DNA of 64,000 nucleotides from contig OZ004609.1 of the NCBI GenBank assembly GCA_963924565.1, forward strand, positions 7,626,001-7,690,000. The letters run 5' to 3'. Both the position numbers and the translations under genes were made by a program. This stretch comes from Ascidiella aspersa. Lineage: Eukaryota. Positions 13,351 through 60,011 of the stretch are shown here, piece after piece. The notes under the pieces were generated by a model. The model saw only the letters and a list, made by a program, of their open reading frames with translations, searched no databases and was not told where the DNA came from. How positions within the stretch are numbered: position 1 is the first letter of the stretch; each line of letters begins with the position of its first letter.

Positions 13351-13881
13351 AATGTTGATTTTTAATATTTGTGTAAAATAGTCTCCATGGGTCATAGTTT
13401 GATTGAGCTTGTACTTTGTATCTTTGATGTTGACAAATATACTTTATAGTTTTGTTATGTATTTTAAGCACATTTTCAATTTCAAAATGTCCTAGATTAA
13501 ACTGTTTACTTTTTAAAGGGCATTGTTATACAGTGTAATTTTTTTTGCTAAAAATATGGACAAACTCAACCATATTCCGCGCGATGGCAGATCCGTACCT
13601 TATTTTTTTAAAGATGTTTGTGTGAATATCTGAATAAGTACCATGCAAACTTAAACTTTAAAAACGGTCAAATTTTGGTATAAAAGAAAAGGTGTGCAAA
13701 AAACAATCGCACACCTCTCGATTTGGCATTGCAAACCCTAGATCTTGACACAATGTGTCATGATGTACAGGTTAACTAAACTTGACATTAAACGAATTTG
13801 TGTTACACTGGTTGCCAGAAAACGAGCAAAAATATTTAATAAAATAGACTAAAATTAATTTTGTATTCTTTATGTCAAAAC

Positions 13882-17388: not shown

Positions 17389-17601
17389 ATTTAAAAAACC
17401 CAAGGATGCATTTTATTGGATGTCCTGAAGGTTAGCCATATTTTTGCATATACTTCTATAGACTGACACAGTCGGTTTTAAAAGTAACTTGGTTGCTTGC
17501 AGCAAAGGAAAAAACGCAATAATTGAAAAATATTTAACAACGGTAGCAATAAACAAATAGTACAAATTTAAAACAACAAGTGAACATGTGATTAATAAAA
17601 C

Positions 17602-20600
17602 TTATTGATTGTTAAATAAAACTAGCTTGCTAAGCTTTTTTCTTATTTTTTCTCCCACTATTTTTTCAGAGGTTTCCTTTCCAAGATGGTACAGCCTTAT
17701 CTTACTGTAGCACTTCGATACAACTTTGATCAGTTGAAAGACATGATTATCCATCACTGTACTGTCAAATATGTGACTATCTAAATCAGGAAATAATTGG
17801 GATGCATTAATACTGTGTAATACTGATGTTGCAATGGCATCTGGAATTCCTGTATTAATCGGTAATTTTCCACCAGAACATGCCAACAATCTTAAGAAGC
17901 ATTTTTCGGTGTCAGAGCACACCCTAATTACACTTTCTGATGGTTTCATAAGACCTCCTCTGTCTTTGAATGTCAAAAAACTGGGTTGTGCTATCATTTT
18001 CTGGGAACCAAGTGCCAAGGAGCAGGTAAAACATGTTGTTTGTTTTTTTGCCATCTTTGCAACATACCCAGCTATGTATGTAATCTGCTTTTTTATATTC
18101 TGATAAAATTTTTATGTTTGGACTGTCACAGTAATCATGGTCTGTTGAAATGGGCAGACGTTCAATGAGGTCATATTTTTTAATTAATGCCACATCAGTT
18201 AACTTTACCTCCGTATAATTTGTTTTACAGGTGTCGCTTATTGCATCCAGAATTGTTGTTGAATCCTGGTTGGAGCAATTGCCATTTGTACCTTTATAAC
18301 AGCTTCTCATCAAAAGACGCTTGAAGGCTGCTGTGAACTGTTGTGCTGTTGGGTTATTATTGCAGCCACCAGCAGTTCGGACAGCACTGAAAAACAATTC
18401 TAGGTGATCTTGGCTAAACTTGTACATTAACAAATAACTTAGTGGAGCATTGGCTCTGCCTACTAAGTTATCGAACAAACCTCTTGTGCTCTGGATACAG
18501 GCTAAAAAACCAACGAAACCAGTTTTTCTTCTGGAAATGTGCATTGGAGTGCTGTCAGTTGTTTTTAACTGCATTATTTAAGTAAAACATTCTGAAAGAA
18601 AGGGATCCCATACAAACTTATTCGCAATCCGAAGGGCAGACTTAAACCTTTGGCGAGGGGATTTCTTAAATTAAAAATGTCAAATAAACGATCAAACATT
18701 CGTAAGAACCTTGGTGCACATCCCTTAAATTCGTTGTTGGTGCACATCCCTTAAATTCGTTGTTGGTGCACATCCCTTAAATTCCTTTAGTTTTAAATTC
18801 TCTGCACAATATTGGATGGCATCAGCTACACTAGAACTCAATGCCTGTGCTGCAAGGTTTACCTTCATTTTTTGCTGCTGCCATTTGATGTGTGCCAGCT
18901 TAAGCTTGTTGCCCAAACGCAAACCTTCATTTTGTTGGAGTTTTTGCAATGCAATAATGTATTGCCATTTGATTTTTCCTCCATCTCCATCTACCAAAAT
19001 TCCCCAATCAGCAAAAGTATTTCGCACAAGTTTAAGCATATGGCAAACATCAAGAAGAACATAAATCCGCTCGGATTTGTTCGAGGGATGTTCAAAGTTT
19101 GCTGTTAAGCAACCTGGTATCATAGATGCACCGAGTTCTCATAACATAGTGAAATGACAAGAAGGACCGTCGCATGTCAGAGATACTACCTTTGCACCAG
19201 TGTATGAAACACGCTGAATACATATTTTGACGATGTTTGCACGCTCTGCACCACTTAAGCCATCTACAAAAAAATATGCACATGGCACCTTCCAACCACT
19301 ATTAATACATACAACCATTAAAACGAGAACATCCTTCGCATATGGTAAAGAGTCGTCATCATAGAGACCATTTCCATGATCTACAAAACCACGAAACTTT
19401 TTACCATCCCAAGCAATATGTTTCCTAATAGACATCTCGTCAAGCATAAGGGAGCACATAACTTGTTTACCATTGTTGTGGGCGATTCTCACCTTTTCTT
19501 TAATTGCAATAAAAGCTGGTTTTGTAAATCCTGGATCCGCATCTATTTTGCCGTACCATTTTCGAATCTGGGCTTGGTGGGGTAATGAAAAATCGAAACT
19601 TTTACGGACAAATTCATATGCTTGATTTTAAAGCTGCTGAATATTGAAATCCTTTGCCAGATTTTGTTTTTTTGATTCTTGTTAATAGTTCAAATGGTAC
19701 CTCTGATAAACACTGCTTTAACATGTCTTCACAGCGAGTTGAAATTAAATTTTTATCCTTTAAAATTCTAATAATACCCTTTAAAGAATTGACCTTCAAT
19801 TTTAATCTTCTCGCTTTTTGTCTTGCAACTTTCATTTTCTTTTTTAATCGTATAATTTTTTCATTGCTTTCTTTCAATTTGTTCTCTTCGTTTTTTGAAT
19901 AAATGTTCAAGCAGTAATTATGGTCATGTGTTATGTAGTTCTTGGGAATCTTAAGTTGGTTGGTTGATCCTAGCACTTGTAGTCTGGCATTTGGTAGTTT
20001 TCTTTCTTTTGTTTGCTAAAAAAAGTTTTACACTTTATTTAAACTTCAAGTGTGTTTTAGTTTACAATGTAGTTAATGTTCAATCTTAGGGTGCTTTAGT
20101 TTTTTTTAAATAATATTTAATACATTTTGCTTAGGATACACAGTGGTGTGTCACAAATGTTTACTTTTTACATAGTATTTTTTAATGTTTAACTATAAAT
20201 GTCGTTCATTGTAATACCCTAATTTGTTATATGGGTCATTCCACATTTAATTTAAAGTTTTTCAAAATTTTCGCACCCATCTATCAAAGACCTCAAAGGG
20301 AAAATAATTTTGCAACAGACTCCAGCTATAGTGGCACTTTTAATTTTTATGGCTTGTCTAACTTTGACAAACTAAATCAATGGGTTCGAAACAATTATAT
20401 TTAGAAATAGCTAGATATTTTACAGGACAATCTAGAAAGTAATTAAATTAATCAATACATTTGTACAATTTGTACAAAATATAAATATTATTAAGCATAT
20501 TGCCACATAAAGACCAGTGGTTCTCAGCCTTTTATAAGTCATGCCCCCTTTTATAAGTCAGGTCTCTGGACATACCGCAAACCTAAACAAAATGGTTTAA

Positions 20601-30100: not shown

Positions 30101-33100
30101 ATGCAGACGTTTATAGTTTTTTGTAAAGGATTTAGCCAAGAAACGTTTGAAACGAATGTTTATGTGTCGCGATGTTTGAATGTTTATGTGTGTTTTAGTA
30201 ACAAAACTGCATATTCAACACTTTCCTGTACACAGTTTGTCTAAGGCAGTTGTTACAATATCATTTAATTATAACATAACAATCTGCGTAACGTTTGACT
30301 GTCTTTTAAGTCACTGAGTTGAGAATCACTTCATTGGACTGTTCAATACTTTAGCAATAAAAAACCAAACGTGTAATTTCAAATAAATTACTAAATACCT
30401 TGAAATGTATGTAAAACTTAAAAATGGCTCTGGCTATACACAGCAAGGCAATCGGTAAAAAACCTTAAAATCGTTGTTTAAATATTAGTGTGAAGGCTTG
30501 CGTGCTTGCCGGCATATTTTTCATACGAATATTTTTTTTTCCAAACTCACAAATATTGCACTGCAAACTTAAAAATCTCTATAATTTTCCGCGGCACACA
30601 GTTTGAGAATCCCTGGCTTGAGGTTACATTTTTTGCGTACAGGCCTGACTTACCGAGGAGACGCCAATCAGACGTACAACAGAAGCTTCTGGAAGTGGAA
30701 TGACGACACCGTGACGTCATATCAGCCATGGGAGCCGGGAAACGAAGGGCCAACTGACACTCGGGGAGCAACACCCTGTGCGCTTGTCAGTGATTTCCAG
30801 TTCAAAAGTCGAAGCTGTGGTAGTTTGAGAGATCGGGCAGCAGCTTGCTACATTGAATCTGCACCTGCGCGAAGAGCCAACAACATTACTAGTAAACTTG
30901 TAACATTAATTGATATACGTTAAAATATAAATCATTATTAATTATACTCTTTAAAGATTAATAAATTGAGTTTAAAGTAACTTTTCACCAAACATCTGAC
31001 TTAGTGTTATCACATTAAAATCCTATTTTAGTGCATCCGGTTTAAGATCCTTATTTCTAGTTATTCCAATTCGAAATTCAGAACCTTGTGTTTGCAGCTT
31101 TAAACACTGACTTTTCAGCGATTTTAAGATCAAAACGTAGTTTTTGATTCTCAATCAAAATTGTAAGCCTAGTGTTTGCAGATCAAAACCCTGATTCGAT
31201 TGTGGAAAGAATTTGGAAAGCACAGGAAAGTTTGAGGAACAATGGTGTGAGTGCTAGCAAGTTGCTATCATTGGAAAGAAACCTCTCAAAGGTGATTGCC
31301 GAAAGTGGCAATATTTCGATTCACGAAACCATCGGAAAAGTCGTGGTCTATATCAACAGTTTTAATGCAACCGGGGATCGAGTCAAAACCAATTTAATTC
31401 GGCTTACCAATGTCACGTCCTTCAATTCAACGTTTGAGACTAAACACGGCTCTAATATGGAATTGGTGGCATTTGAGGTGAGTGTTTACAACCTTTCATC
31501 CAGCTTTCACAACGTTTCTTCAAGCAGTCTCAAGGGCCCGACAACTCATTTCGTGAGCCTTTCTCCGATGGTCTTTACCGGGGTTTCGAGCTACGACGCC
31601 GCAGGAGGCTCCGCACTAATTGGTTCCATCTCTCTTTCGAGGATCGTTGCACAAGACAAGGAAAGCGACCAGAGGATGTGTGAGAAAGTATGGAGTGAAG
31701 TCCCCAACAATTCCTCGACAGGATTAACAATAGATACGCTTCAACTCACATGTGTTTTCATCGACCAGTCATCTGGAACCTATTCCACTGCTGGTTGTCG
31801 CACTAGAGAGGACGGGGGGCAGGTCTTATGTGAATGTGATCACCACACAGTGTTTGCTGTTCTCCTCTCTGTAAACATGGTTTCTGTGACACAGGAGGTT
31901 AAGGTAAAGCATAATTATTGTTTGTTCAGATATTTTAACAACATGTAAAATTTTACCACTAACTAATCCGTTCCAGATCTTTTCTTACATTTGCGAATCT
32001 ATTTCGATTCTGTTCCTCACCGCCACCATCGTACTCCTGCGCATTCACAAACGCGCGATCAGCAGCGACCGTACTCTCATTCAGCTTAACGTCGCCATCG
32101 CCCTAACTTTGTTGCATTTAGCCAACCTAACTCATGATGCCGCTGCAAACGACAACACCATGTGTCTCATTCTAACGGCTGCCATTCAGTACTTCCTTCT
32201 TGCTACAGGTAATTTGAAAGCTAAAAACAAACCTACCTGCTTGCTTTATCAACAGCGTTCGACAAATGCTGTGTAGGTTATTTTAAGCAATTGTTTTAAG
32301 TAACTGGTATTTTTAAATAAATTTATCTATAAGAACAGCCAAACAATTTTTTAGCCATATATACCCTAATTAATGATAAAATAAAATACTTTTTTCGACA
32401 AGTTGACGTTGTTAAAGATCTTTTTGTAATCTTTAAAAGCCAACTTTAAACATTCACATAATATGCACAAACGAACAAAATTGTATTTAAGGTTTTTGGT
32501 TCATGTTCGATGGAATACGGATGGCGATGGCCTTGGCTTTTCCAATTCGTTTCCACACCAAAGACCCCGAGACGAGATCAAGAGTGTTCTTTGTGCTGGG
32601 ATGGTTCGTTCCAGCCGTGATAGTTGGCTCGGCGCTTTCCGTCGGTCTGCTGTATTCGGCAAACTACATGAAGCCCAGCACACACTACGAAAAATGTCAC
32701 CAATTTCAACAGGTATCCACTCATTGAAACAAGTGTTGATTTTTCACGTTTAAAATATCAAAACAGCAGGCCATATGGTCAATATAGATTTAAAGCAATT
32801 GTTTTTGCTAATGCATTGGGATATATAACCCAGTTGAGAGCATGGAAACAAGCTTGACTTTTCGGTTAGGTTTTTAAAAGGCTTAAGTAGTGTCCCTTTA
32901 TGTTTTTTAGAATATCCGCAAGTACGACAGATGCTGGTTGGCTCCCGGTACATTGGTGTACATTTTCTCGGTGACTGTCCCGCTCGGGATTGTTCTGGTG
33001 GTGAACTTCTTTGCATCTCTCATCGCAGCTTATGCAGCGCTCCCATTCAGGGGAAGGGAGGAGCGGAGACAAGGAGAAGAGATGGAAAATGCAAAGAAGT

Positions 33101-34254
33101 TCATTTTCTCCTTTGTCTTCGTGATGCTGGTTCTCGGAGCAAGCTGGGTTCTTGGATTTTTCTCAGGTTGAAGTGCATTTGCAGTTAAAGTAACAATTTC
33201 TCTATCTATAAATGTTTTTTCACACGGTAGAATACATTTTATTTTGCACGTTTGTATAAAGTGTTGTCACGTTTCTATAAAACAGGGGTTCCCAACCTTT
33301 TTAGGATCTCGTACCACGTGGACGCTCTGTAGTGTCACGCGTACCACACTAATTTGATCAAATCATATTTTGAGCTTACAACTAGCACTTTTCAACGCTA
33401 TTTGAGGCGTAAGATATAAAACAGTAGATTATACAGTAGATTAGTGCAATCATTTGACATAATTAAGCTCACGTTCCCATAGCGTTGTAGCCTACGCTTT
33501 ATACAGCAACTGTGCTCCTTGTCAACAATTGACATGGCTGTATTTTGAAGATTGCATTGTTTTGAAACAACAGGAATAGTTACGTAACAACAAGAATGGG
33601 CTTCGGGGGAAAATTTTTTTATGTAAACAAAAACAGATGAACAAAATATAAAGTTGTGAGTCCACGGTTTTGTGAAAAAAAACGAAGCTACTCGCGTCCC
33701 CTGAAAAACCTTCGCGTGCCACTAGTGGTACGCGTTAAAAAAATCTTTTCAAATTTTGTATAAAGAAATTCGACACAATTTGGTATAATAAAGCACGTTT
33801 GTTGAAAGTAAAGTTGATATGAGATGATAAAGATTTTCTACCAATTAAAATTACACTTTTTTATATATCATGTGAGTTGGCTCGTTTTGACAAACTATAT
33901 GGTTTAACGTTTGTGTGAATTTTTTACAAGGTTAATGATTGTGTGTATTTTCCTAAAATAAATTGCTCATATTAAAACGCTGATCATTTTAAATTTAATG
34001 CAACGTTTAAACAAACAGATATTTCTTGTTGCTGTGCAGGTCTTGGAAACGAAGTTACGTCACTTGTGATGATGTACATCCACACGACAGTCAACGGTCT
34101 GCAAGGAGTGGTGGTGTTCATCTTCTATTGCCTCCAGAACAGAACCATCGCAAACAGACTGGGATTCCCTCGAAAGCGACCAAAACCAACTTCGTCGACC
34201 TTCAATCTTCAAAACAGGGATTTTAGCGTGAGAACAAATATGTCTCGCTTTTAA
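27175..34254 (+). CDS. Adhesion GPCR with signal peptide, C-type lectin-like domain, GAIN/GPS and 7TM (~785 aa)
   Basis: Exons 27175-27241, 27305-27433, 28423-28512, 29496-29672, 30643-30891, 31182-31903, 31977-32208, 32492-32712, 32911-33166 and 34040-34254 are all GT-AG, phase-consistent and stop-free (2358 nt). Motifs: CTLD YC...FWLGL...WKWND....YQPWEPG...C...C...C; GPS CVF...STAGC...CECDHHTVFAVLL; secretin-like 7TM with QYFLLA, GWFVPA, CWL, LGASWVLG and NGLQGVVVFIFYCL. Exon 3 is the least certain. Confidence 0.88.
33283..33735. mobile_element. hAT-type MITE in the last GPCR intron (right end truncated)
   Basis: Left end CAGGGGTTCCCAACCTTTTT..CGTACCAC; subterminal palindrome CGCGTGCCACTAGTGGTACGCG at ~33713-33734. 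Confidence 0.55.
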
Positions 34255-35385: not shown

Positions 35386-35598
35386 TTAAATGATCACGCA
35401 GTCGGGCTGGTTCTTTTGGTTTTCTTCCTTTACGTTTTCAAACAGATTATCAAGTTGAGCGGTGCATCTTCCTTGGAATCTTTCCGGCGACGAATCGCAA
35501 TCTCGAAGTCTCGCTACGTATTCATTCGTGAGGGTCTTGAGCACTTCGCGATGTACCCCTTGCAAAATGTCTGGATCCACGTACTTGTTGTTGCAAAC
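35386..35598 (-). CDS. Alternative terminal exon 18b of the atlastin-like GTPase, ending in a CaaX box (CVII)
   Basis: Phase-0 acceptor tttaag| followed by VCNNKYVDPDILQGVH...RFQGRCTAQLDNLFENVKEENQKNQPDCVII*. It is clearly paralogous to exon 18a ([16 protein letters not shown]...[24 protein letters not shown]). Splicing 37803 to 35598 gives an ~872-aa isoform. Confidence 0.75.
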   Translation of the reverse strand, partial: VCNNKYVDPDILQGVHREVLKTLTNEYVARLRDCDSSPERFQGRCTAQLDNLFENVKEENQKNQPDCVII

Positions 35599-36397
35599 CT
35601 TAAAGGATCAAACAGACAGCATTTCGTGAAGTGAATAGGCTAGTGGGTAGTTCTGGACTGATAATAGTTGTTTTATTAGTTGCGTTCGCAATAGTTGTTT
35701 GCAACTTTCGACAAAACGTCGCGAATAAAAAAATATTTTCGCTAAAAATTAAGTACGTTGTAAAAGTGAAACACTTATCTCGGTTTAACAGATAAACACA
35801 TATCTCAACAAGTCAAGCCAAGAATCACGCAGTAAGTCAAGTAACTAGGCTCGAGGTGCATTTCTAACTAAATCGGTTAAAATGCAGTTAATGCAAATTG
35901 TTATTCTACGATCTAAATCAATTTGTTTGTCCAACGCACTTCAGCCAACCTTTGCGTGTGACTTATTTCAGTAATTTTCCTGTGCGATTAAGGCAAAACT
36001 TTCTTAATAACTAAACTGTCATTTTCTATAAAATAAGGATTTAGTATGTTCCAGTCTCCTATAGAAGAAAACCTAATTCAACACGGACCAAAATTATTAT
36101 TTATGGAGTGTTCTGGTTGCTAAAAATAAATTGTTCTAAATCAATGACAAACAGCGAAATATCTCCGTCTGTCGTTTTTTATTATTTTTGTTAACAACAT
36201 CCACTTCTGTCGACGCAACAAGCGTAAAGCGTTATGCAAATATACAGGAGTTATTAATACATAGGTCATAGACAAAAGAAATAAAAAAGTACTCAATATA
36301 TGGTTTCAGACTACAGCAAAGCCATTATCAAATTAAAGCTAACACACTACAACTTTTGAATACATAAGGACACATTCCAATACACAAAGCTCTTCAA

Positions 36398-39300
36398 TTA
36401 GTCAAATAAGCTCACAACAGCATTGACACCAGTTTCAATACCAGATTTAATCGGTTTCACTACATATTTCTCGAAAGGTTGTGCAACATATTGATCCACG
36501 GTACTTGAAATGCGATACCAAAGGGTTCTGTTTTCCTCGTTTAGTTTCTTCACAGACTTGTACTCTTTGTTCAGCTCCGATTTGCATCTCTCCAAGAATG
36601 GTTCAAGAAGCTCCCTACTCTCCGATGCTGATTCGATTTGCCGTCTTCCGCGCGACTGAAGTCCATCATGTACATTTTGGAGGACTTCCTCCTCTACGTA
36701 ACGTCCATTGCATTGCTGTAGTTAAAGTTTAAACAAAATTTTAGGAGAAAAAATAATTCCTGTGTAATTTATTTACCTTACTATAAACAAGTCCGACATT
36801 AATCACTTTTGTAATAAGCGTTTACCTATTTTAATTATTTTTACTGTGTTCAAGGTTGGCTGTATTTTGCACTTACGTTCGAAAGAAATGGATTCTCCAT
36901 TCAGAACAGAAAATCATACATAACTATATGCTCTTGTGTTTAATACTGTTGTCTTTCCCTGATTGTACAAATTTTCACTTATTTTTGAACTAGTTTTCTT
37001 AAAGATTGCAGTTTTTTTAGATATCTCGATTCAGAATTGAGCGATGTGTTTATTTATATGTAACTAAATAGGTGAATATAAAGAACTTTAGATATAGGAT
37101 TGCAATGCAACTCACTGCTCCAACCACATAACTATGGGAAATACTCAACTATATGGTGGGCCAAAACTCGGCTTACAGTTATTAAACTTTTGTTAGGTAC
37201 CATTGAATGGCTACCACGCGGATAAAAACCCCAAACCAATAAATTTACTTTTAGACCCAAACCCTACTTTTTATAAGTGTAAGCCTACATTTGGGCCACT
37301 CTGTATACGCTATCTCGCGTTTTAAAGTATGCCCTCTTATCCATCTAGCATTTGGAAGGTCAAATTCGACAAGTTTAAGTATAGTTAAGTCCGACACCGA
37401 CTCCGCTGCTCTAATTGTGCTGAGGTTTTCAACACGTTAAGCACGACACATGCTACGAATAACCCCAACTGGCGCCTAGAGTTCGGGCATGAATTCAGCC
37501 ACCAGTAGACCACTTAACAGGGTTGCATACATCATTAATATACACAAACTATAACACTGCTTTAATATTTCTTACGCGCTTTGTATAAAATAGATTGAAA
37601 GTAGGTATATTCTATGCGTGATCTCCAGGAAACATTATCAGATATAAATCAATCAAAGCAATTTATAGGCTTTATACGGCCAGACGATTAGCTGCCAACG
37701 TATTAATTAAATTTTACTAAAAGATCTCTTGTAATAAGAATTATACACCGGACAATAAAACAAGTATCACTTGGCTAATATAACTTTAACAGATTGGCTT
37801 ACTTTTTCCATGGTCTTCATGTATTCCGCTTTTATGTCTTGCAACTCTCGTTCTGCATTTTCCTCACACGTTGCCTGCAATACAAGAAGATCTATTAAAT
37901 AAACAAACACGAGACGAGTGAAAACAATACTACTTTGAGGTATAAAAATCTGTGGACCTTATATAGCTAGTTCTAGGAGGGACTATTTAGCAAACGTTTT
38001 AACATTACGGCTAACTCCCAATAACTTGCAATTGGCATTCAACGATAAATAATTTTTATTATAATTAGGTAGTAACTTTTCTCATTGCTTTCCCATTATA
38101 AGGTTGAAATCTTTCCCTAATTTGAATTTTGGCGTATAAAATACCGCAGTGATTTGATTTACATTTTGAGGCAACGGTTTAAGGTCTGGCAAGCAAATTA
38201 AGAATTACAAAAGGCAGTTGAAGGTAAAAATGCTATATTTAACAAATTTGGACGCGAAAATAAATAACAAAAAACAACGATTGCCAAACTAAATAAACCT
38301 GTAAAAACACCAGGTTCAAACTCAATAGGTTGGGATAGAAGAACTTAATAAAGATTTTTATTGCTAAAAATCCTAAAAACGCCCAAACTTAAAGCAGTGG
38401 TTCCAAACGCCAAGAACACCAGCAACAGCAAGAGCATAAAATAACCATCCACAGTTCCAGCCCAAGGAATTTTACTCATTATTTTTTAGCTACCTTGTTT
38501 TGTTCGTTTCGCTCTTTGACTGAAACAAAATGCCCTTCAACGTCAGTCTCCAGCTTTCGACGAAACTCGTCAAAATATTTTTCAGGTTGCTTTTTGTCGA
38601 CGCGATCGTAATCGTGTAAAGCGTCGCTCTTCAGTAGCTGGTGTCTCTTGACCAACTTGGATTCTTCATGGTAAGTTTGGGAACTCTAAAATGTATTAAA
38701 ATTGTAAATCTTGGCGTAAATGTATTTCAACCTGCTCGCATGACAAACCGTAGCAGTTTTGACAGCTTCCAATAACCGAAAAGAGAATTTACATATTGCT
38801 TGATGAATTTAAAACCGATTCCGTAAATTTCACATCAATTGCACATTCTAAAACGGGATCTTAATCTGATTTTAATTTGTGACGCGGAACCTTTTGTAAA
38901 TTAATAAAAAATCATGTGTTTTCCTTTTACAATTGCATATGCAAGCAAGTGCGACTTGCATACTATCCATTAAAGAACTGGTAAAATTATGGTACTCATA
39001 TATTGCTTTGATGTCTAGGGAGTGTGACTGTCAACCTATTAATGAAAAGAGTGTGAAAAATGCGTTTTTTTTAATGGAACATCAGCAGAAAAATTACCAC
39101 TTAATTCTATCGACAGTAATTTCACCTCCTCGATTCGCCGTTGATAATGAAGGTAGGCTTCACGTTTTGCTTTTTCGAAGTCATTCCGAGCCCTTTCCTA
39201 GAAGATGAAAATGTAATCAGATATTTAAAATAAATTTAATGCATTTTCGTGCAAAGCGTTCAAGCAAAATTTGTTCTTTACTATGGGAAAATTGGCATTA

Positions 39301-45300: not shown

Positions 45301-48300
45301 ATTAAACATGGACACAAAAATGCATTTTAGTACTTTAACTTTGTAAAATAATTGCTAGTTTTACAGACCTTAGTCATTTGGTTGGAGTAAGCTTCCTTGC
45401 ATTGCTGAAGGATGGGTATCATTGCTGCCTTTGCACTTGCCTATACAAACAGAGAATAGTTGGTACTATACCCTGCTAAAAACTGTTATAGCTGTATAAT
45501 GCAATGTTGAAATCCGAATAGTTGGATTATCTTAGTTATAAAGGGAATGGAAACTATTAACTTCTGTTCACATTAATTAATTAATTCAGTATCATATGCG
45601 GAATACTAAGTGAATAAATTACGGTACTTCCGATTCGCCAACAAAAGTCGCAAAACACCTGGTTCAATTTGCTTTTGACGCTTGTAGCGCTCAAATTAGG
45701 AAAATTCGAGGCTTTGTAGCGTCTGTGTTAAAACACGTTTTAGAAATTTTACGGTTCAAGCGAACTGTGTTAGAACTGGATAAAAGTAAACAGCGAATGC
45801 GCAGACTAATCAAGCTTCGGTATGAAAGATGATAGCCAGGAACCGCATTATTCACCAAACATGTATGGTAAATACATTTACTAAAACGAGAAATAAAGCC
45901 ATTCTCAAAGTAGTTTTACTTATGTTGAATTAACAATGCTTTAGCAACAATAAAAGTCTAACCTGCTATTAACGGGGTTAAATTATAAACATTTATAATG
46001 TACAAAACTGTAAGAGAACAAATCCGTAGTCTGCATCGCTTGGCAACGTTTCGTTATGGATGATTAGTCTGCCCATTCGCTGTTCACCTGACTTGAGCGC
46101 TACAAGCGTTGAAAACAGTCAAAATAGATTATTTAGGCTAGACAAACCAACTATTGAAGCTGGACAAAATGTGACTGAAGTCCAAACTTTATTTAGAACA
46201 ATGTTATTATAGGCACGAGTTAACCTAAGTATAAGAAAAACCTAGCCAAAATATTTATGCGACTATATTCTCGAGAATGATTAGCAAAAAAACCTGCAAA
46301 ATTGTCCCGACGTCTGGCATTTTCCCACTTCGAAACACCTCGAAGTAAGCCAGCATAAAGTTGATGAGAGCTTGCCCTGTTACGATGTTGCCGTTAACCC
46401 TCTTGATGACGACATTGTGAGGCGAAAACAAATGCTGAACGAGCTCTTCCAAATGGTCGAGAAAGTCCAATTCCACTTCTGCATAATAAATAATATTATT
46501 AAACGCTTAAAAAAGTATATGACGTTGTGTCTTTAAAAAATCACTGTTCGACACAGGAATTCTAAATCGGGATATTTGACAGAAATTGTATGATATGTTG
46601 AAATGCTCGATATCAGTTTATCGACAACAATTCGATTGCTCCAGACTTAGTTTCAACTTTTCTTAGCCGATATACCGCTGACTTTGGGGCGATTTACCAA
46701 TGGAGGCCATTTTTAACTTGCAGATTACCTGCCAGACAAATAGAGCTTCCCTGTTTCTGTCCTCTGACAGCCACCTTCCTTCCAGGATGAGGCATCAGAA
46801 AGCAGGACACGTCGTCGTAAGAATCCTTCACGTTTTTTCGGACGGACTCCAAGTCTTTGTGCTTCGTCTTTACGGCCAATAAATCTTCCAAGACCTGTCG
46901 ACCGCCTCCTATACCAAGCTCGAAATCAGGGTCCTGCCAATCTCGCACCAGAAACAGCAGATTCTAAAATGTTTCGCACTCTATATTTAGGATGTATAAC
47001 GTCGTAAACTCTAAGCGTTGCTTGTTTAGGTCGCAAAATACACAATGTGGACACCATAGGTAAATGTGAATAGCATTTGATCTATTGCAACAGTCGGAAG
47101 GGTAAAATTTGTGTGTCGAAATATTAGAATTCGGGCATTTTTAACAACTGTCTCTAATATATGGTAAACTTTGAAAGCTCTAGAAACGGTCAACTATAGC
47201 GAAAAATTATTTAATAACCTACCTGAAAAGGTTTTCCGTTCAGCCTGCTAGATTTGTGGGCCGCTTTGCCGTAGTCCGTGAACAACTGGCAAATAATTGC
47301 GAAATAGTTTCAGACTAAAATATTTCAATTGTGTTAATTTCATTTATTCCTATACTTGCAAATGCTGGAGGGCGTCTTCCTGTATCTGCTGCATGACATT
47401 GTAGATTTGCACGGAACTTATCATCGTGCTTAAAGCAAATATGACGGAACAGCCTTTGACCGAAGTAGAACTGTCAAAGGCTCCCTGCGTGTCCATCAGA
47501 AACACGGCGACCTGTAATAAGGATTGTTTGGTAAGTCAGGTTGAAAAATGTTGAGAGGCAGATTACATATAGCGGCTCGATTGTCTGTAGTCCATTTATT
47601 GACTAAAATGCGATTTGCGTTACATTGTATCCTAATAAACTATATATGCATTATGTAGAAACTGTTTCTTCCAAACTCACGACCAAAACTGGTGAAATTT
47701 TGTATAGGTTCTCCTCTCTGTTAACAGTTTTGCCCAGTTTTAAGTTACTTTGATTGATAAAAAATCCATTCAGCCCTAGAATGTTGTTGTTTCATACAAG
47801 ACGCAATACAGCACTGAACAGTCAGTAGCGCAAAGAAAGCACTATAGCCAAAATTTTAGGATTCTCTTTAAATCGTTATTCGGCAAATATGAGGTTTCCA
47901 ATCAATTGCATTATGATCGAAATTATATTGCTGAAAATGCTCGTTATGTTTCTATTATGGATATATGCAGGACTCATATGCTAAAATATTACCTCTCCAG
48001 CTGGTGTATTGACAAAGAACGGTTCGTTCCACAGCCAGACTCCTTGCGTATGCCTGTCCTTGCCGCCTCTCCAACCGAAACCTTCACGAAGCTGCTCGTC
48101 TTTGTTGGCAAGCCACGACTTAGACTAAAATACAATTTAAAACTGAATATGGTCGAGTTTAATCCTGATAAGGAAAGAAGCCAATTTATTCAGCAAATCC
48201 GCAACTGAAAGCAAATGTGAAAAAAACACTATTGTAAATACACGCATCGTTCTTTGCCAGTAAAACCTATTTTTTGTGATGTTAACAGCAGATTGGATTA

Positions 48301-49133
48301 TTGATTGTTGAGGCCTTGATTACTTCATGCTAATTCATCGTCAAATAGTAAACACACTACTACACGGTACCGTAAAATCTATTACTGGGTGTATACGGAA
48401 AGGAACGCCTTGTTTACTCCTTGCTAATAAACCGCCGAATAGTGAACACACTACTGCAAAGAACTAAAATCCCACATAAATTGGTGTATATAGCAATTCC
48501 CAAACTGTGTGCCGCGGCACACTAGTGTGCCTCGAGAGATTGCCAAGTGTGCCACGAAACTTTTTTGTAATTTCGGAAAATAGAATATTTGTATTACCGA
48601 TAGACATACACGCAAGCATTTTAGACTTAAATACGCCATACCCCTAAAAAATTTATTGTATTGCAACATACATATATTTTGTTGTGTGTTAAGGGCGATT
48701 GTAAAGTTACTCTGTTGTTATTCTGTTAAAAGTGTTCCGCAAAATATTTCAGATAATTTTAGTGTGCAGCGAACCAAAAAAGTGTTTGGGAACCACTGGT
48801 GATACGAAAAGGTACGATCACGGTAAAAATGCTTGGTTTTTATCCGAACTTGAACTTGCAAATGAACCATCCGTAATCATGATCAATCCCCGGAAGCCAA
48901 CTTACCTTTCCTTGCTTCTGCGACCACAAGTAGCGAAGAAACAAGTTGAGCATGAAGGATTTCCCTTTGCGGAACGCACCAGCCAACGAATACACGGCAA
49001 CCGGAACGTCAGCGACCTGACCGAACACCCGCTCAAGTTCCACTGAGTCGATTTCGAACGAACCCGAGTCATTTGGTCGAACAATCTGGACGGCCTTGTA
49101 AGTTCCAATGTCCTTGCGTTCTGCGTAAAGCAT
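36398..49133 (-). CDS. Atlastin-like (GB1/RHD3 family) large GTPase with six tandem three-helix-bundle repeats and no TM hairpin (~907 aa)
   Basis: Exons 49133-48906, 48124-47993, 47511-47356, 47285-47223, 46963-46729, 46478-46294, 45440-45369, 45265-45068, 44550-44479, 44241-44047, 42517-42446, 41526-41332, 40670-40599, 39799-39605, 39197-39126, 38685-38494, 37874-37803 and 36715-36398 are phase-consistent and stop-free, with one GC donor at 41331. G1 GAFRKGKS, G2 [12 protein letters not shown]3 DTQG, G4 VRDW and FLMPHPG are atlastin signatures. Confidence 0.9.
41700..41981. mobile_element. hAT-type MITE in GTPase intron 11
   Basis: 14-bp TIR CAGGGAGTCGAACC / GGTTCGACTCCCTG, perfect 8-bp TSD CCTTGCAT, and internal (CGGTTC)-type repeats. 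Confidence 0.9.
43175..43890. repeat. Diverged ~200-bp direct duplication in GTPase intron 10
   Basis: ...tgttatattttatata.gcattatcaa...ttccaatgccgctaccac.ccaattttt...gggcaaacaacaaa occurs at ~43190 and ~43685. Confidence 0.7.
48491..48798. mobile_element. hAT-type MITE in GTPase intron 1
   Basis: TTCCCAAACTGTGTGCCGCGGCACACTAGTGTGCC at the left and TTTGGGAACCACTG at the right. Related ends occur at ~30590-30615 and ~54882. Confidence 0.7.
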
Positions 49134-49788
49134 TTTATTCTATGCTTTGTCTTCATTAATATTATATACACTTCAAAATAAGAATAATACGGACTCAACA
49201 AAACGCACCGCCTTTTTCAAATTCGCGTTATGTGAAAGAGTTTATGCTAAAGTTCAGGTCATAAGCACGACCTATTCGATGACAACTGTTCTAATACAAG
49301 AATGATAGAGCTAACGTTTCACTCTTTACTTACGGTTGTCAGTCATTCCATATCCGTGTTCATTTAAAATGTCTCCTGATCGATCATCACTTCGAGGCAT
49401 ATAAGACATGGTTTTAGCCAACAAACTTATATTTATAAAGAGAACTAACTATAAGGCTCTGACTGTCTTTAATCGAGTTTAATGTGCTTAAAACGAATAT
49501 TCCTGCTTGTTTTTATATACACCGCTGAAACGACATTAATAGTGAGCTTCAGAGCTTGTTATTGACAACAACAGCTACGCCGCGATTTTCGAACTAATTT
49601 GTAAAAGTCTAAGCGTACCAGGCTTACACTTGTGACTCAAACTAATGTTCTGCTTCTTGCTCGATGCGTTACGCCGCTTAAATAACACAGCATCGCACAG
49701 CGCTTGCAAGGCAGACAGAGAGTACACAGTTTTGTCGTTTTATGTGTTCAATACGGCCATGACCTTTTCTCTCCACTCGCCAGACACG

Positions 49789-50655: not shown

Positions 50656-51754
50656 TCTTGAACAACTAACTAGACTTTGCCTAAAGCAAACGAAAAAAGC
50701 CGCAAAGTCGCGTTCGACTTCTAAGCGCTAAACACCGAGGATTCCCCGCAGGAGTTTGTGGAGCAATAAAGAAACAAGCTCGTCGAACTCATGAGGCAGG
50801 AGTTCAAGCGGTTTCAGACGGGGAATCACCACAGACGGGAAACTGGTTTGGTGGTACATAGAAAATACAAAACAAAGACAACTATTGCTCTCTGTCTGGC
50901 GATACGTTGCCGCTGTTATAAATTACAAGCAATTTGTAGATTCCGTTAAATCCAAAGTTAGCGCCTTTTTGCTTACACAAGTATGTTAACCTGCTCTACA
51001 CATCAGTTTTTTTGTTCAATCAGAATGCAAACTTCTAAATTGTCGGGAAAGCGGCTTTAGGTAACCCATACTGCTTGAAAAGTTTATAAATGCGTAATAT
51101 AATAGGTTCGAGTGTTTTTTATGCAGATTTTGTTTTATCCCTTTGTTTACTTTCGAAATAACGTGTCGTGTTGTGTGTACAATTCTGCCAAAAAATTCAG
51201 ATGTCCGATTAGCATGAATATAAAGTTCGTACCATTCGGAATTTGGGAAGTTGGGTTTTAACCTTAACTTAGCTTACATCGGTCTGAAATGAGTCTGCCG
51301 TTTAAAACGGCGAAGTCGCTTACATATTGGGGATTTCCCTTCGAGCTGCTAGAAGTTTCCACTCTTTCCCTGAGTCGATAACTGTGCCTTGTGAATTATT
51401 TTGTTTAAATAATCTCCCCCTATGTTTATTTTGGACAACAACAGAAACATTGGCTAAATCAAAATAAAACGATTTTCAGAATGCTAAAAATCAAATGCAA
51501 TTTAGGTTTAGGTATTGCTTTCCTTTGCCTATGCGAACAAAACTTAGTACAATGCAATTTAATGTTTGTGGTTTAGGCGTTTATAAGCTTCCCAGGTCTT
51601 AGCCTGTTGGCTGTAAAGTGTTTTGTGTCTTTACAAGCCCTCGCGAGATTCAAAAAAATTGGCTTGATGTTATGTTCGTACCGAAGGAAATGTGACGTCG
51701 GTTGAAAAGCGAAACGCTGACGTCAATCAATGCTCAAGTGACGAAAATGAACAG
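50656..51754 (+). pseudogene. Inverted, decayed copy of GTPase exon 10 - intron - exon 11
   Basis: ~50656-50839 matches exon 10 (..[30 protein letters not shown], with stops and a lost donor). ~51684-51754 matches exon 11 (..EM*RRLKSETLTSINA..EQ|gt, acceptor mutated). The intervening sequence has patchy similarity to intron 10. Confidence 0.85.
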
Positions 51755-54305: not shown

Positions 54306-56202
54306 GGCCTTTGCTTGGGGGGTAAAAACCTGAAATATTGCGTTTTAGCACTTTGTAGCTAACGACAGCCATATAGCAGCAGAAAAACTTTCATACAGAA
54401 TTCGTTCATATTCGCTTGCTTTGTCCAGCTTGTGAAGTGACGAAGCGACTTACCGCCTGCTGGGCTTTATTGTCCCGCGCGTGAGACTTTCATTGTGCGA
54501 AGTGGCACGTCCTAAACTGGGCTCGTGCGACTTGCATTTTAAAACGAGGCTTCTCTTTAGTAAAATTACTTAATGCTGTTAAGAAACAACTTATTTTACC
54601 GCCGCAAATTTAAATGCAAAATCTGGTGGCAACTCTAATCCAACATATCAACACCAGGCCTACACAACTTAAAATTGCAAATTTAATAGTTTTCCCCCCA
54701 AATACCTGGCTACGCCTCTGACACTGGTCAATATTAACCATTTATTTGCGTTCTCCAATCTGCACTAACTTAAACAAAATAACATTTGCCAAAAACATCT
54801 GCACACCGTCTGCGAATTTTCGTTCTACCATTTGTTTTTCGCCAATGACCAAACCTGCTTTTTTATGTCTTAGCGTTACATCAGTGGTTCTCAAACTTTT
54901 TCAGCTTGCAGAACACTAAAAAAATCTTGAATAATTCGCGGCACACTTTAACAGAACAACAATATAGTAATTTGACAAATGGCCTTAAGACGCGACAAAC
55001 TATAATATGTAAATGTATCAATATTATTTATTTGTTAAGCATTTTTAAGTCAAAATGATTGCGTGTATGCCTATTGATAAATCTTTTGGAGTTTGGAGCA
55101 TGTTGATGTAAAGAAACCTTCGATATTGCAGAGCGACCTTGATATGCCTTGTCACCAAACAACATGTGTGTTGGAATCATAGTGTATACTACGCAAAAAG
55201 TGGGTTCAGGGCTAAAGTGGTTGCTTTAACCAAGTTAAGCGTAACTTTGAAGTGTGAAACGGCAATACAAAGCATTAGCATTTATTATGATTTTCACGAC
55301 TCTATTAAACCTTTAAAGAGATATTAATTATGTTGGTCATTAATGTTGAAGTTTGGAATAAACAATTAAGTGTTAACCATCAATAATTACAGACAACGCA
55401 ATGGAATCATAGTGCATTTTAGACTTTGCCTTCTGCTTCCACTGTCTTCAAAATTAAATTTTGCCGAAATAGAATTTTATCCCCAATCGCCAATTTTATC
55501 ACAAGTACTGGGGCCTTTGCTTGGGGGGAAAAAACCTGAAATATTGCGTTTTAGCTCTTTGTAGATAACGACTGCCATCTAGCAGCAGAAAAACTTTCAT
55601 ACAGAATTCGTTCATATTCGCTTGCTTTGTCCAGCTTGTGAAGTGACGAAGCTACTCACCGCCTGCTGCGCTTTATTGTCCCGCGCGTGAGACTTTCATT
55701 GTGCGAAGTGGCAGGTCCAAAACTGGGCTCGTGCGACTTGCATTTTAAAACGAGGCTTCTCTTTAGTAAAATTACTTAATGGTGTTAAGAAACAACTTAT
55801 TTTACCGCCGCAAATTTAAATGCGAAATCTGGTGGCAACTCCAATCCAACATATCAACACCAGGCCTGCACAACTTAAAATTGTGTATAAACTGTTGCTA
55901 CCAGGCATGGTAATGTAAATCAAAAAACAGCTCCTCTGGTAAGTGTAATTGTTAACCAACGTTTAACGTTCAATAATAGCACGAGAATCAGACTACAGGA
56001 AAAGATTATTTTTGGAATCGTGGAATATTTATAAGAAGGGTAACACCATGAACGTCAAAACTGACGTGATGCTTTCTGCATGCTACAAGCACCTGCTGAA
56101 CGCCTAGAGGCAGTCGCTAATTATTTTCTTATCGTTTTGTTGCTCGCGTTTATTTCTGCTTTTTTTCCTTTCCATTTATTGTACGAGCGTTCAGTGTCAA
56201 TC

Positions 56203-56243
56203 ACCCTGACGAAGGCGGCTTGTATAGGTTGCCGAAACGTTGG
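56203..56243 (+). ncRNA. Minimal type I hammerhead ribozyme (Penelope pLTR type), copy 1
   Basis: ACC-CTGACGA-A-GGCGGCTT(GTAT)AGGTTGCC-GAAAC-GTT-GGT: canonical core, 8-bp stem II with G-U pairs, palindromic AACGTT stem III and stem I ACC/GGT. Confidence 0.7.
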
Positions 56244-58242
56244 TTAACAATTACACTTACCAGAGGAGCTGTATTTTTATTTATATTAAAATTGTGTGTT
56301 GATATGTTGGATTGGAGTAACATACTGTACAGGTGCAAATAGCAAATATTCTCCAAATACGATTTTTTCAAATTGTATTTCATCGTATTGTCGCGGTTAT
56401 ACAAAAAGAGGTAAGGCCGTGAATAAAGTTTCACCCACCGTACAATTAAAGCAGGGAAGCATTTCGAGTAGGGATGTTCAAGGCAGAATATCGGCGACAC
56501 ATTTATAATGAAAAGCTTCGCCTAATAATCAAGTGACAATAGGGTGTATTTACCGCCGCAAATTTAAATGCGAAATCTTAAGGCAGTGTACGCCTCTCTG
56601 ATAGCACCTGTTGTGCATGTTGCTCCAACCAACATACCAATATCAGGCCTAAACATCTAGCAAAACTTTCGATTTAATAGTTTGCGTATTGAGAACATAA
56701 TAGTTTTTTTCATATTGTTTAAAACTACAGATTTAAAGCCTGTTTTAACAGCGATTGCTCGGCCCAAGCCATGGTAAAAAATTACCGAGTAAAAGTTTAC
56801 AAAAGTATAGCAAACCATAGGCGTTCCATTTTTAGTCTTTAAGAGAATGATAATATTTGCTTTTCAAACACGTAATCTGGTAAAAATTTAATAAAATGAC
56901 CATACGCATTATCTACGTAAATTCTATTTATCAAATATATGTTTCGATCATTCCCCAAATTCTACGCCATATTTGAACCCCTTTCGCATCAAAGGCAAAT
57001 TTTAAGTGGGGACGTTTTCGGCCCATATCTGTTTTTGCTTGCAGAAACAAGTTTAGGAAAATGAAAAACAAAATATATAATATAAAGTACACAATACAAA
57101 ATATAAAAAAAAAAAATTAAACAAAAAAAAATTAAAATAAAGTAAAAATTGAAAATAAACACTAAGCCCTGAAAATATATTCCCTGACAAAATATGCAAC
57201 AACCGCACCCCCGTCTAGTTTTTTCTGTTTTTTGTTACGTTTCGGGCCTATTTTTTTAAGGATTTTAGAGAAATAAAAACGTAAAAACTTGAAGCTTTTA
57301 GATATGACGTAGAGTGGTAAAAAGATGTTAATTTAAAGATTTAGACATTGAAGACTATAAGGATTATTTCCAATTGATAAGTGTTTATTAAGCAGCAAAT
57401 TATTACTATTTCCTTTCCGCGCCCCATTTTTTTAGAATGCTACGGGTTATACGGATTATGTACTTTATGGTATAATTGAGTAAGAAACAACATATATAAC
57501 TAGAAGGGGTTGCGGTTGTTTATTTTGTCGATGGGTATTTTTCAGGGCCCTATTTTTAATGTTGGTTTGTCAATTGGTTGGGTCATTAAAAATGTAGTTG
57601 GGTATAGTTGGGTCAATAAATATATATTTATTTACCAGGTTATTTCTTGTAATATTATATATTACACTTTGGTTTGTTGGTTGTGAGGTATATATTGAGT
57701 TGTACTTTACCTTGACTTATTTCTGCAAACAAAAACAGATATGGGCCGAAAAATTCCTGCCTTCTCCTGACCTAAAGTGATGCAAAGGGGAAAGTTAGCC
57801 AACTAATACTTTTTCTGTTTTTTTTTTGTTGTAAAAAATATGTAAAAAGTATTTTTTAGTGGAGAAAGAGTTAGAGTTAGGATGAAGAGTAACAGGAAAA
57901 CGGTTGATGCATCAAATTGTGCCCGCATATTAGGGCTGGCAAATATAAAGCTCGTCTTTCACAGAACATTTTTTCATTTCATTCTCTGCCAGAGCAAAAC
58001 AAAATATACCGAGGGTCGAGCGAGACGAAAATATATCCCTCGACAAGCCCATCTCAAATGTCCTATTCTTCGTTGTTACGGTAAAGTTCACGTTCGGCTG
58101 TGCTCGGCTGCTGCCTTATTCACACATGGCGTCATCTAAATAACGTCTGGCTGATTTAACGCAACACATAAACCTCACCCATTCAATTATAACGCCAACG
58201 GAACAGGTCGGGTTCTGGTTGAATGCCGCACTATAACCCAGG

Positions 58243-58488
58243 CAGAGGCGTAGCTACGGAGTCGGTTAGGTACATATATCCCCAAGCGCCCAGGTATGCC
58301 CAAATAAGGCTTGCAAATGCTTAAATGAGAGTGAGACTGCTTTTTATTACAATTGTTCTGTTAAAATTTGTTTTTTTTTCCCCTATGAAGTAATGTATAT
58401 TATGTTAATGTAATAGAAAATGTGGTTAAACATGGAGGAGGGGCGCAAATTTAATAGTTTTCCCCCCAAATACCTGGCTACGCCTCTG
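58243..58488. mobile_element. MITE with CAGAGGCGTAGC TIRs (second copy at ~62011-62255)
   Basis: CAGAGGCGTAGC ... GCTACGCCTCTG. Only the right end survives in the first array copy (ends ~54720). Confidence 0.7.
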
Positions 58489-59970
58489 ACACTGGTCAAT
58501 ATTAACCATTTATTTGCGTTCTCCAATCTGCACTAACTTAAACAAAATAACATTTGCCAAAAACATCTGCACACCGTCTGCGAATTTTCGTTCTACCATT
58601 TGTTTTTCGCCAATGACCAAACCTGCTTTTTTATGTCTTAGCGTTACATCAGTGGTTCTCAAACTTTTTCAGCTTGCAGAACACTAAAAAAATCTTGAAT
58701 AATTCGCGGCACACTTTAACAGAACAACAATATAGTAATTTGACAAATGGCCTTAAGACGCGACAAACTATAATATGTAAATGTATCAATATTATTTATT
58801 TGTTAAGCATTTTTAAGTCAAAATGATTGCGTGTATGCCTATTGATAAATCTTTTGGAGTTTGGAGCATGTTGATGTAAAGAAACCTTCGATATTGCAGA
58901 GCGACCTTGATATGCCTTGTCACCAAACAACATGTGTGTTGGAATCATAGTGTATACTACGCAAAAAGTGGGTTCAGGGCTAAAGTGGTTGCTTTAACCA
59001 AGTTAAGCGTAACTTTGAAGTGTGAAACGGCAATACAAAGCATTAGCATTTATTATGATTTTCACGACTCTATTAAACCTTTAAAGAGATATTAATTATG
59101 TTGGTCATTAATGTTGAAGTTTGGAATAAACAATTAAGTGTTAACCATCAATAATTACAGACAACGCAATGGAATCATAGTGCATTTTAGACTTTGCCTT
59201 CTGCTTCCACTGTCTTCAAAATTAAATTTTGCCGAAATAGAATTTTATCCCCAATCGCCAATTTTATCACAAGTACTGGGGCCTTTGCTTGGGGGGAAAA
59301 AACCTGAAATATTGCGTTTTAGCTCTTTGTAGATAACGACTGCCATCTAGCAGCAGAAAAACTTTCATACAGAATTCGTTCATATTCGCTTGCTTTGTCC
59401 AGCTTGTGAAGTGACGAAGCTACTCACCGCCTGCTGCGCTTTATTGTCCCGCGCGTGAGACTTTCATTGTGCGAAGTGGCAGGTCCAAAACTGGGCTCGT
59501 GCGACTTGCATTTTAAAACGAGGCTTCTCTTTAGTAAAATTACTTAATGGTGTTAAGAAACAACTTATTTTACCGCCGCAAATTTAAATGCGAAATCTGG
59601 TGGCAACTCCAATCCAACATATCAACACCAGGCCTGCACAACTTAAAATTGTGTATAAACTGTTGCTACCAGGCATGGTAATGTAAATCAAAAAACAGCT
59701 CCTCTGGTAAGTGTAATTGTTAACCAACGTTTAACGTTCAATAATAGCACGAGAATCAGACTACAGGAAAAGATTATTTTTGGAATCGTGGAATATTTAT
59801 AAGAAGGGTAACACCATGAACGTCAAAACTGACGTGATGCTTTCTGCATGCTACAAGCACCTGCTGAACGCCTAGAGGCAGTCGCTAATTATTTTCTTAT
59901 CGTTTTGTTGCTCGCGTTTATTTCTGCTTTTTTTCCTTTCCATTTATTGTACGAGCGTTCAGTGTCAATC

Positions 59971-60011
59971 ACCCTGACGAAGGCGGCTTGTATAGGTTGC
60001 CGAAACGTTGG
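59971..60011 (+). ncRNA. Minimal type I hammerhead ribozyme, copy 2
   Basis: Identical to 56203-56243, shifted by one repeat unit (+3768). Confidence 0.7.

Follow-up and report, generated by a model that had tools for sequence, protein, structure and literature searches.

Gene organization of the locus

The window, which is the whole stretch of DNA analyzed here, spans 64,000 nt of the Ascidiella aspersa genome (G000:C3:7626001-7690000). Its main subject is a minus-strand gene at approximately 49.1 to 35.4 kb that ends in two terminal-type exons, designated 18a and 18b, which may act as alternative last exons. The product is a large GTPase of the GBP family, with a head of atlastin-like type and a six-module helical stalk. 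Two exons, 48843-49139 (E 9e-8) and 47353-47535 (E 2e-20), match PF02263, the Pfam domain of GBP large GTPases. The gene thus has the N-terminal domain of the GBP/atlastin branch, and the P-loop of its GTPase head is of the atlastin kind.

The stalk runs from 45440 downwards and consists of six modules, each with a 72-nt phase-0 exon ("a") and a 192-198-nt phase-0 exon ("b") (Table 1). In all five internal "b" exons, the donor lies immediately 3' of an N..N.. motif (GT in four, GC in that of module 3). The exon of module 3 is apparently followed by a GC-AG intron, with the donor gcaagt at 41332 and no in-phase GT at the module end. Exon 17, which opens the sixth module, is flanked by the acceptor ttgcag and the donor gtaagc and is 100% conserved in gene C and copy c3, two of the paralogous copies described below.

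Table 1. Positions of the exons, signals, paralogous copies, and related terminal exons discussed in the text. Single-nucleotide positions refer to the window unless a contig or locus is named; positions in kb are those of the chromosome.
Feature	Position	Strand	Description
Stalk module 1	72-nt exon 45440-45369; long exon 45265-45068	-	
Stalk module 2	72-nt exon 44550-44479; long exon 44241-44047	-	
Stalk module 3	72-nt exon 42517-42446; long exon 41526-41332	-	GC donor
Stalk module 4	72-nt exon 40670-40599; long exon 39799-39605	-	
Stalk module 5	72-nt exon 39197-39126; long exon 38685-38494	-	
Stalk module 6, exon 17	37874-37803	-	Sixth and last 72-nt "a" exon; phase 0, open frame; common donor for both ends; followed by two terminal-type exons
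Exon 18a	36715-36398	-	Proximal terminal exon; acceptor ctacag; phase 0; 105 aa + TAA
Spacer	35599-36397	-	3' untranslated region of 18a and sequence intronic in the putative 18b isoform
AATAAA	36183-36178	-	Polyadenylation signal of the 18a isoform; 214 nt past the 18a stop
18b acceptor region	35599-35625	-	Pyrimidine-rich tract, tttaag; -1 to -14 identical in c1-c4
Exon 18b	35598-35386	-	Distal terminal exon; acceptor tttaag; phase 0; 70 aa + TAA; C-terminus QPDCVII
ATTAAA	35161-35156	-	Weak candidate polyadenylation signal for the 18b isoform; 224 nt past the 18b stop
Copy c1	window		Complete gene A
Copy c2	7754-7768 kb		Complete gene C; exon-by-exon 96-100% identical
Copy c3	G000:C3:7748944-7752250 (loci L003/L043)	-	5.2-kb tandem partial duplicate: part of the module 5 "b" exon, exon 17, 18a, 18b
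Copy c4	7710-7717 kb		3' fragment; no GTPase head upstream
Copy c5	7837-7842 kb	+	3' piece inside a disordered array of duplicated stalk modules
T1	L056:~6751-7329		Long tail: hydrophobic stretch and PPPY motif
T2	7819-8061 (L054/L056)		Short tail
T3	10001-10342 (L054/L056)		Hydrophobic, glycine-rich tail
C1 paralogue terminal exons	C1:34281550; C1:34283223		T1-type; T3-type

Anatomy of the two terminal exons

Exons 18a and 18b are both open in phase 0 and start, behind an AG, at the conserved x-Cys-Asn of the "b" half-module. Exon 18a has a 64-aa half-module core (36715-36524), followed by a tail of 42 residues that opens with TLWYR (36523-36401) and a stop codon (36400-36398). Exon 18b has 65 module residues of the "YVDP...KNQP" type (referred to as T3 below) that end in ...ENQKNQP; these are followed directly by DCVII and TAA (CVII codons, 35400-35389; stop, 35388-35386). 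Neither exon has a donor at the canonical module end, where 18a contains no GT, and in both the reading frame continues past this point, as in the terminal exons of relatives. The coordinates and translations confirm the initial annotation, which had described two paralogous phase-0 terminal exons after exon 17. The two are 28.6% identical over 63 aa, find each other by tblastn within the window (E 4e-5 and 7e-6), and share the six columns that are invariant among terminal exons. Being homologous, adjacent, and of like phase, they have the makeup of tandem-duplicated mutually exclusive exons. In sequence they also have the layout of alternative last exons, with a common upstream donor and a separate acceptor, stop, and 3' untranslated region for each.

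The C-terminus of 18b was likewise correctly read as a CaaX box, with Cys in the fourth position from the end, two aliphatic residues next, and X as the free C-terminal residue. Such ends are rare by chance. Among the 4358 open frames of at least 30 aa in 234 kb of the gene cluster, only 13 (0.3%) have a strict CaaX-like end, and five of these 13 are copies of 18b itself.

Between the two exons (36397-35599), no 72-nt phase-0 open exon bounded by AG and GT or GC was found, as the initial annotation had stated, and a wider scan for AG..GT candidates of 45-150 nt gave none that is plausible. The further statement that 18a has no in-phase donor holds for the module end but not for the tail, which contains in-phase GT dinucleotides (the best being GTGAGC after 36416). 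Because the 18b acceptor is also in phase 0, 18b could in principle be spliced after 18a through such a cryptic donor to give one longer protein. However, neither copy c3 nor the c4/c5 lineage retains the GTGAGC site, the frame of c4 is interrupted by a TAG before this point, and two tandem half-modules with no 72-nt exon between them are seen in no module of the family. We therefore consider this arrangement very unlikely.

A separate possibility is that 18b is part of a different transcript, either an independent small gene or an antisense or neighboring adhesion-GPCR (G protein-coupled receptor) unit. The convergent adhesion-GPCR gene ends at 34.25 kb, about 1.1 kb off, and a 107-aa antisense open frame covers 18b. 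Yet 18b accompanies 18a, not the GPCR gene, at all five loci where the pair occurs; it is a clear homologue of the terminal half-module of the family, in the strand and phase of the GTPase gene; and its frame contains no Met that could serve as a start codon. On this evidence, the assignment of 18b to another transcript is barely credible.

The AATAAA that had been noted downstream of 18a was located at 36183. This signal, AATAAAAAACGAC, is preserved in all five paralogous copies despite their diverged surroundings.

Paralogous copies and conservation of exon 18b

The 18a/18b pair is present at five loci on one chromosome, within 180 kb (c1-c5; Table 1). Copies c1-c3 differ from one another by about 3%. 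Copies c4 and c5 form a second lineage, with 92-98% identity in their non-coding DNA, that is far removed from c1-c3. Copy c3 adjoins the 3' side of the 18b exon of gene C, and with this partial duplication directly downstream, gene C has four candidate terminal exons in a row. Exon 18b is intact in four of the five copies. In copy c5, an AG-to-AT change has removed the acceptor of 18a, and 18b is missing its beginning together with its acceptor; in copy c4, the 18a tail is interrupted by a TAG and a frameshift.

Comparison of c1 with c4 gives 94% nucleotide identity for 18b, with 13 substitutions in 213 nt and a single in-frame 3-nt insertion. The corresponding values are 89% for the 18a core, 74% for the 18a tail, and 71-82% for the intron segments that can be aligned. 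By blastn, neither the bulk of the 18a-18b spacer nor the DNA more than about 50 nt past 18b could be aligned. The spacer aligns with the c4 lineage only in about 43 nt after the 18a stop and about 37 nt before 18b; with c5, only a 95-nt stretch (36264-36170) aligns beyond the exon-flanking ends. Exon 18b is thus an island of conservation amid less conserved or unalignable DNA. Sequence upstream of the last 14 nt or so of its acceptor diverges between copies. Three nucleotides of the CaaX codons distinguish the lineages; the encoded motif is CVII in c1-c3 and CVIT in c4/c5. That the acceptor, the frame, and the CaaX box are kept in two paralogue lineages suggests that 18b is a constrained element.

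Copy c5 lies in a region (G000:C3:7794388-7855000, plus strand; loci L047-L053) that contains a gene with one G domain, a 20-kb gap, and a disordered array of stalk modules (sets of modules 3-5). At least four 18a-type terminal exons are found in this array (7831387, 7834775, 7840784, and 7854718), which resembles a birth-and-death zone for stalk and tail exons. In addition, a lone inverted copy of the module 2 "b" exon is present in the window at 50668-50946 (plus strand; 70% amino acid identity, residues 9-65), about 1.5 kb upstream of the first G-domain exon and on the opposite strand. The same copy is found upstream of gene C (G000:C3:7769430, plus strand). At the genome level, one G-domain exon has at least 56 matches, with clusters on contigs C1, C2, C3, C4, and C6. 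This count represents a large lineage-specific expansion of GBP/atlastin-like GTPases. In the C6 cluster (27.0-27.4 Mb), many of the G-domain matches have an internal TAG.

Terminal exon types in related genes

A protein homologue search with 18a and 18b gave no matches, which is uninformative because proteins of this species in the relevant length range are evidently absent from the database. With a profile of the terminal half-module (A1), only two proteins were matched among 1.84 billion representatives. The first, and the sole named homologue, is a protein of the tunicate Clavelina lepadiformis annotated as "guanylate-binding protein 7-like" (XP_076818142); its head and stalk follow the plan seen here, and its C-terminal tail is hydrophobic. 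The second is a 107-residue metagenome open reading frame with a glycine-rich hydrophobic tail at its end.

A scan of metagenome contigs gave four loci. In two of them, L054 and L056, which derive from another species, three terminal-type exons (T1, T2, and T3) stand in tandem behind the last 72-nt exon (4554-4625). The three differ in their tails, and each one has a separate stop and an acceptor of its own, placed at the same point of the module. A profile search of the A. aspersa genome found 21 terminal-type exons, among which tandem terminal pairs are limited to the 18a/18b group and one gene on contig C1. The core of the C1 T1 exon was read from search matches and the part that lies within locus L006.

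The best match of the L056 T1 exon in the A. aspersa genome is C1:34281550 (39% over 186 residues, in a 189-residue open frame), and that of T3 is C1:34283223 (41% over 111 residues). For both types, the C1 paralogue and L056 are reciprocal best matches, and the motifs FFTNISHPKR and PPPY are common to the T1 exons of the two. At the nucleotide level, just 55 nt align between the C1 and L056 loci. Two stop-bearing tandem terminal exons are therefore kept as coding sequence across species in which non-coding DNA is saturated, and the only reading apparent to us is that they are alternative ends of one gene. The tandem terminal exons of the C1 paralogue provide the strongest support for an alternative-end mechanism, though they belong to a paralogue of the window gene. 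Because this paralogue and the other species both keep such exons as coding, alternative last exons look like a trait of the family.

The T1 tail itself (L056:6751-7329; G000:C1:34281550-34282098) has a hydrophobic part, FFTNISHPKR...AG.AG, and then a hydrophilic region with PPPY. The PPPY is a possible binding site for WW-domain or Nedd4-type ligases.

Once the C1 exon is set aside, T3 is matched best in the A. aspersa genome by the four intact 18b copies (38-43% over the 65-residue core), which outrank every 18a-type exon. Since 18b is nearer to T3 than to 18a (29%), it is no recent copy of 18a and the duplication is old. The earlier description of 18a and 18b as duplicated last exons is thus correct as to their paralogy, but 18b is of the older T3 type. 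After the N..N.. motif, all other terminal exons have an aromatic-aliphatic-Arg motif (TLWYR, TWIRN, IWLR, or TFLRK); only 18b has DCVII and a stop at this place. These comparisons suggest that 18b is a distal T3-type terminal exon in which the hydrophobic tail was replaced by a CaaX box, and no remnant of a hydrophobic tail was found downstream of the 18b stop. In a maximum-likelihood tree of terminal-exon cores, the 18b copies group together, and 12 of the 16 inner branches are unresolved. Among the relatives found, the CaaX box appears to be restricted to the small 18b subfamily.

The tail of exon 18a

The first part of the 18a tail (TLWYR..VD..YVAQP.EK) is shared by six 18a-type exons, one of them from a paralogue with just 63% overall identity. 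NRT-WYR is invariant in these six exons, and the final 15-20 residues of the tail vary. In the paralogue at C3:7834775, the tail is 64% identical.

The initial annotation had proposed that this tail is amphipathic, and this part of it fared poorly. The best 18-residue hydrophobic moment is 0.55, a value reached by 31 of 2000 shuffled sequences and thus modestly above expectation, and the stretch in question contains Pro and Gly. An AlphaFold model of the 18a exon alone is of low confidence (mean predicted local distance difference test [pLDDT] score 57, below 50 throughout the tail); in it, the second helix of the module runs on to about residue 77 and a short helix occupies residues 90-104. 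This model speaks neither for nor against an amphipathic helix. An amphipathic membrane-binding role for the tail remains a guess. Neither 18a nor 18b has a hydrophobic stretch of transmembrane length, and the 18a tail has no transmembrane segment. An assignment to the atlastins proper, which have two transmembrane segments and an amphipathic C-terminal helix, was considered and rejected for both ends.

Evidence for and against the use of exon 18b

Several observations weigh against the idea that 18b is a functional CaaX-encoding end. Its acceptor is AAG rather than CAG or TAG, and no AATAAA occurs within 640 nt past its stop (the first is at 644 nt). The ATTAAA listed in Table 1 is indistinguishable from chance in AT-rich DNA, and the other copies have different A-rich hexamers in this area. 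The CaaX box, although kept in the paralogous copies as CVII or CVIT, is absent from XP_076818142, from the metagenome contigs, and from the other 16 terminal-type exons of the genome. Nei-Gojobori estimates for 18b between c1 and c4 are dS 0.11 and dN 0.053, with a ratio of 0.48 that is not significantly below 1 because the counts are small (4.5 synonymous and 8.5 non-synonymous changes). Between c1 and c3, the ratio is about 0.9. Variable sites in 18b are distributed 6/5/10 over the three codon positions, a test with low power for coding constraint. For comparison, the 18a core between c1 and c4 has dS 0.26, dN 0.081, and a ratio of 0.31. The dS of 18b is below that of the 18a core, so exon-sized gene conversion could mimic conservation. 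Finally, 18b is intact in the headless fragments c3 and c4, so an open frame alone is no proof of use.

The dN/dS ratios, the low dS, and the persistence of 18b in headless fragments would all fit an explanation in which 18b is an unused relic: a truncated T3-type exon that is carried along in segmental duplications and remains similar by recency or gene conversion, with the gene making the 18a isoform only. The loss from 18b of a hydrophobic tail that is conserved in the T3 exons of other genes and species also favors this explanation. However, no other piece of the 3' region is as well conserved between the two lineages as 18b, which lies inside DNA that cannot be aligned. Its sole indel is in frame, its acceptor and CaaX box are both preserved despite three substitutions in the box, and only by coincidence would a conversion tract begin and end at the exon borders. 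Moreover, the absence of any remnant of the old tail downstream indicates that the truncation is old, yet the frame is clean. We regard a relic as unlikely, with a chance that is nonetheless appreciable.

Alternatively, 18b may be used but CVII may not be a prenylation substrate, in which case the two ends would give a tailed and an essentially tail-less soluble isoform. The X residue (Ile, or Thr in c4/c5) is outside the classical choice of Leu or Phe and of Ser, Met, Ala, or Gln, and there is no polybasic or second lipid signal upstream of CVII. In contrast, the pattern Cys-aliphatic-aliphatic-X is preserved across the lineages even though its Cys, Val, and Ile codons have undergone synonymous changes, which is unexpected if only truncation mattered, and in other systems Ile is accepted by geranylgeranyltransferase I and Thr by farnesyltransferase. 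Such a soluble isoform seems improbable.

The reading that we prefer is that 18a and 18b are mutually exclusive alternative last exons and form a switch between a tail isoform and a CaaX isoform. The initial annotation had proposed such a one-locus switch; the anatomy of the exons, the conservation of 18b, and the tandem terminal exons across the family support it in part, and the points listed above count against it. On balance, we give it about an even chance of being correct.

Proposed mechanism

Under the preferred reading, transcription through 18a would set the choice between the two ends. Use of the 36715 acceptor by the donor at 37803, together with cleavage downstream of the AATAAA at 36183, would yield an isoform with the non-lipidated 42-residue tail. 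If 18a is skipped, splicing from 37803 to the acceptor 1.1 kb further on, at 35598, and polyadenylation downstream would yield an isoform that ends in CVII. The nearest candidate signal for the latter would be the weak ATTAAA at 35161. In CaaX boxes, X = Ile favors geranylgeranylation and X = Thr favors farnesylation. CVII would thus probably be geranylgeranylated, cut after the Cys, and methylated, such that the lipid could tether the GTPase to membranes. In evolutionary terms, 18b may have arisen from the distal terminal exon type of the family, with the hydrophobic glycine-rich tail swapped for a CaaX box in the 18b subfamily.

Other features of the window

An adhesion-GPCR gene with a GPS motif (PF01825) and a 7tm_2 domain (PF00002) is located at 31148-34254 on the plus strand and is convergent with the GTPase gene. 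Its stop is about 1.1 kb from that of 18b, and the 3' ends of the two genes may therefore overlap. A transposase remnant with a TNP-like RNase H C-terminal domain (PF21789, E 4e-21) is present twice, at 6283-8435 and 17416-19298 (minus strand). A hAT-type element with frames of 379 and 265 aa lies at 17102-15199, its hAT dimerisation domain being at the Pfam cut-off. Tandem repeats are present in two regions. At 54900-62900, a repeat with a period of about 3768 bp contains identical open frames at 56065/59833, 57598/61366, and 54955/58723/62490. At 12000-13400, a low-complexity array with a GC skew of +0.41 has long frames in two minus-strand frames, which consist of repeated "SALRQQISLATPINLFSIIF"-like units.

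Comparison with known systems

Toggling of a CaaX box by alternative ends is a known kind of mechanism. The formin INF2 has CAAX and non-CAAX C-terminal variants, in which alternative ends toggle the box (PMC3237625). As may be the case here, one gene has two C-terminal ends of which one carries a CaaX box; the prenylated CaaX end of INF2 fixes the protein to membranes of the endoplasmic reticulum, and the localisation of the variants differs. However, INF2 belongs to an unrelated family, and its isoforms and farnesylation were shown by experiment, whereas those proposed here are predicted from sequence. In addition, only in the present gene are the two exons paralogous copies of a stalk half-module. 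In Cdc42, homologous alternative last exons (CaaX vs. CCaX) change the lipid signal (PMC6411841; PMC4870516). These are also mutually exclusive homologous 3'-terminal exons with separate 3' untranslated regions that alter the lipid anchor of a GTPase, but both ends of Cdc42 are lipidated, whereas only one would be here, and Cdc42 is a small GTPase rather than a member of the dynamin superfamily.

Among closer relatives, human GBP1, GBP2, and GBP5 are anchored by CaaX prenylation, and invertebrate GBPs have been called poorly understood (PMC9005921). The vertebrate proteins belong to the same superfamily branch, as judged by the Pfam GBP domain, and have a C-terminal CaaX box as a membrane anchor. 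They differ from the window gene, which has an atlastin-like P-loop in its head and a six-module repeat as its stalk instead of the helical domain of GBP1. Because the CaaX box arose here on a different terminal exon, it would represent an independent gain. GBP-5ta is a splice form without the CaaX box (PMC9179834), but it arises by truncation, with no exchange between paralogous exons. Atlastins with variable C-terminal extensions (PMC8624677) resemble the window gene in their G domain and in C-terminal variation between forms; they differ in having two transmembrane segments and an amphipathic helix. The T1/T2/T3 arrays of the C1 paralogue and L054/L056 share the architecture, the acceptor position, and the tandem terminal exons with different tails. 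Their distal exon has a hydrophobic glycine-rich tail and their T1 exon has FFTNISHPKR and PPPY, and none of these exons has a CaaX box.

Implications for the GTPase family

A broader and more tentative proposal, to which we would give somewhat less than an even chance, concerns the expanded GBP/atlastin-like family as a whole. With more than 50 G-domain copies, this family may diversify the location of its GTPases by means of a terminal-exon cassette in which each exon would finish the final module of the stalk and supply its own kind of anchor: a long PPPY tail (T1), a short tail (T2/18a type), a hydrophobic glycine-rich tail (T3), or, in one young subfamily, a CaaX box. The last of these would be a convergent gain of a prenyl anchor outside vertebrates.

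GTPases of the GBP type protect cells by forming coats on the membranes of pathogens, and whether a given mammalian member is able to do this depends on the CaaX lipid. If correct, the findings presented here would be new in three respects: a switch of this kind in an atlastin-headed, repeat-stalk relative of the GBPs, an independent origin of a CaaX box on an exon type that otherwise carries a hydrophobic anchor, and a family-wide terminal-exon cassette. Should the locus yield both a prenylated and a non-prenylated isoform, prenyl anchoring would have been invented independently in this family, and the choice of terminal exon would be a compact genetic device for sending one enzyme to different places.

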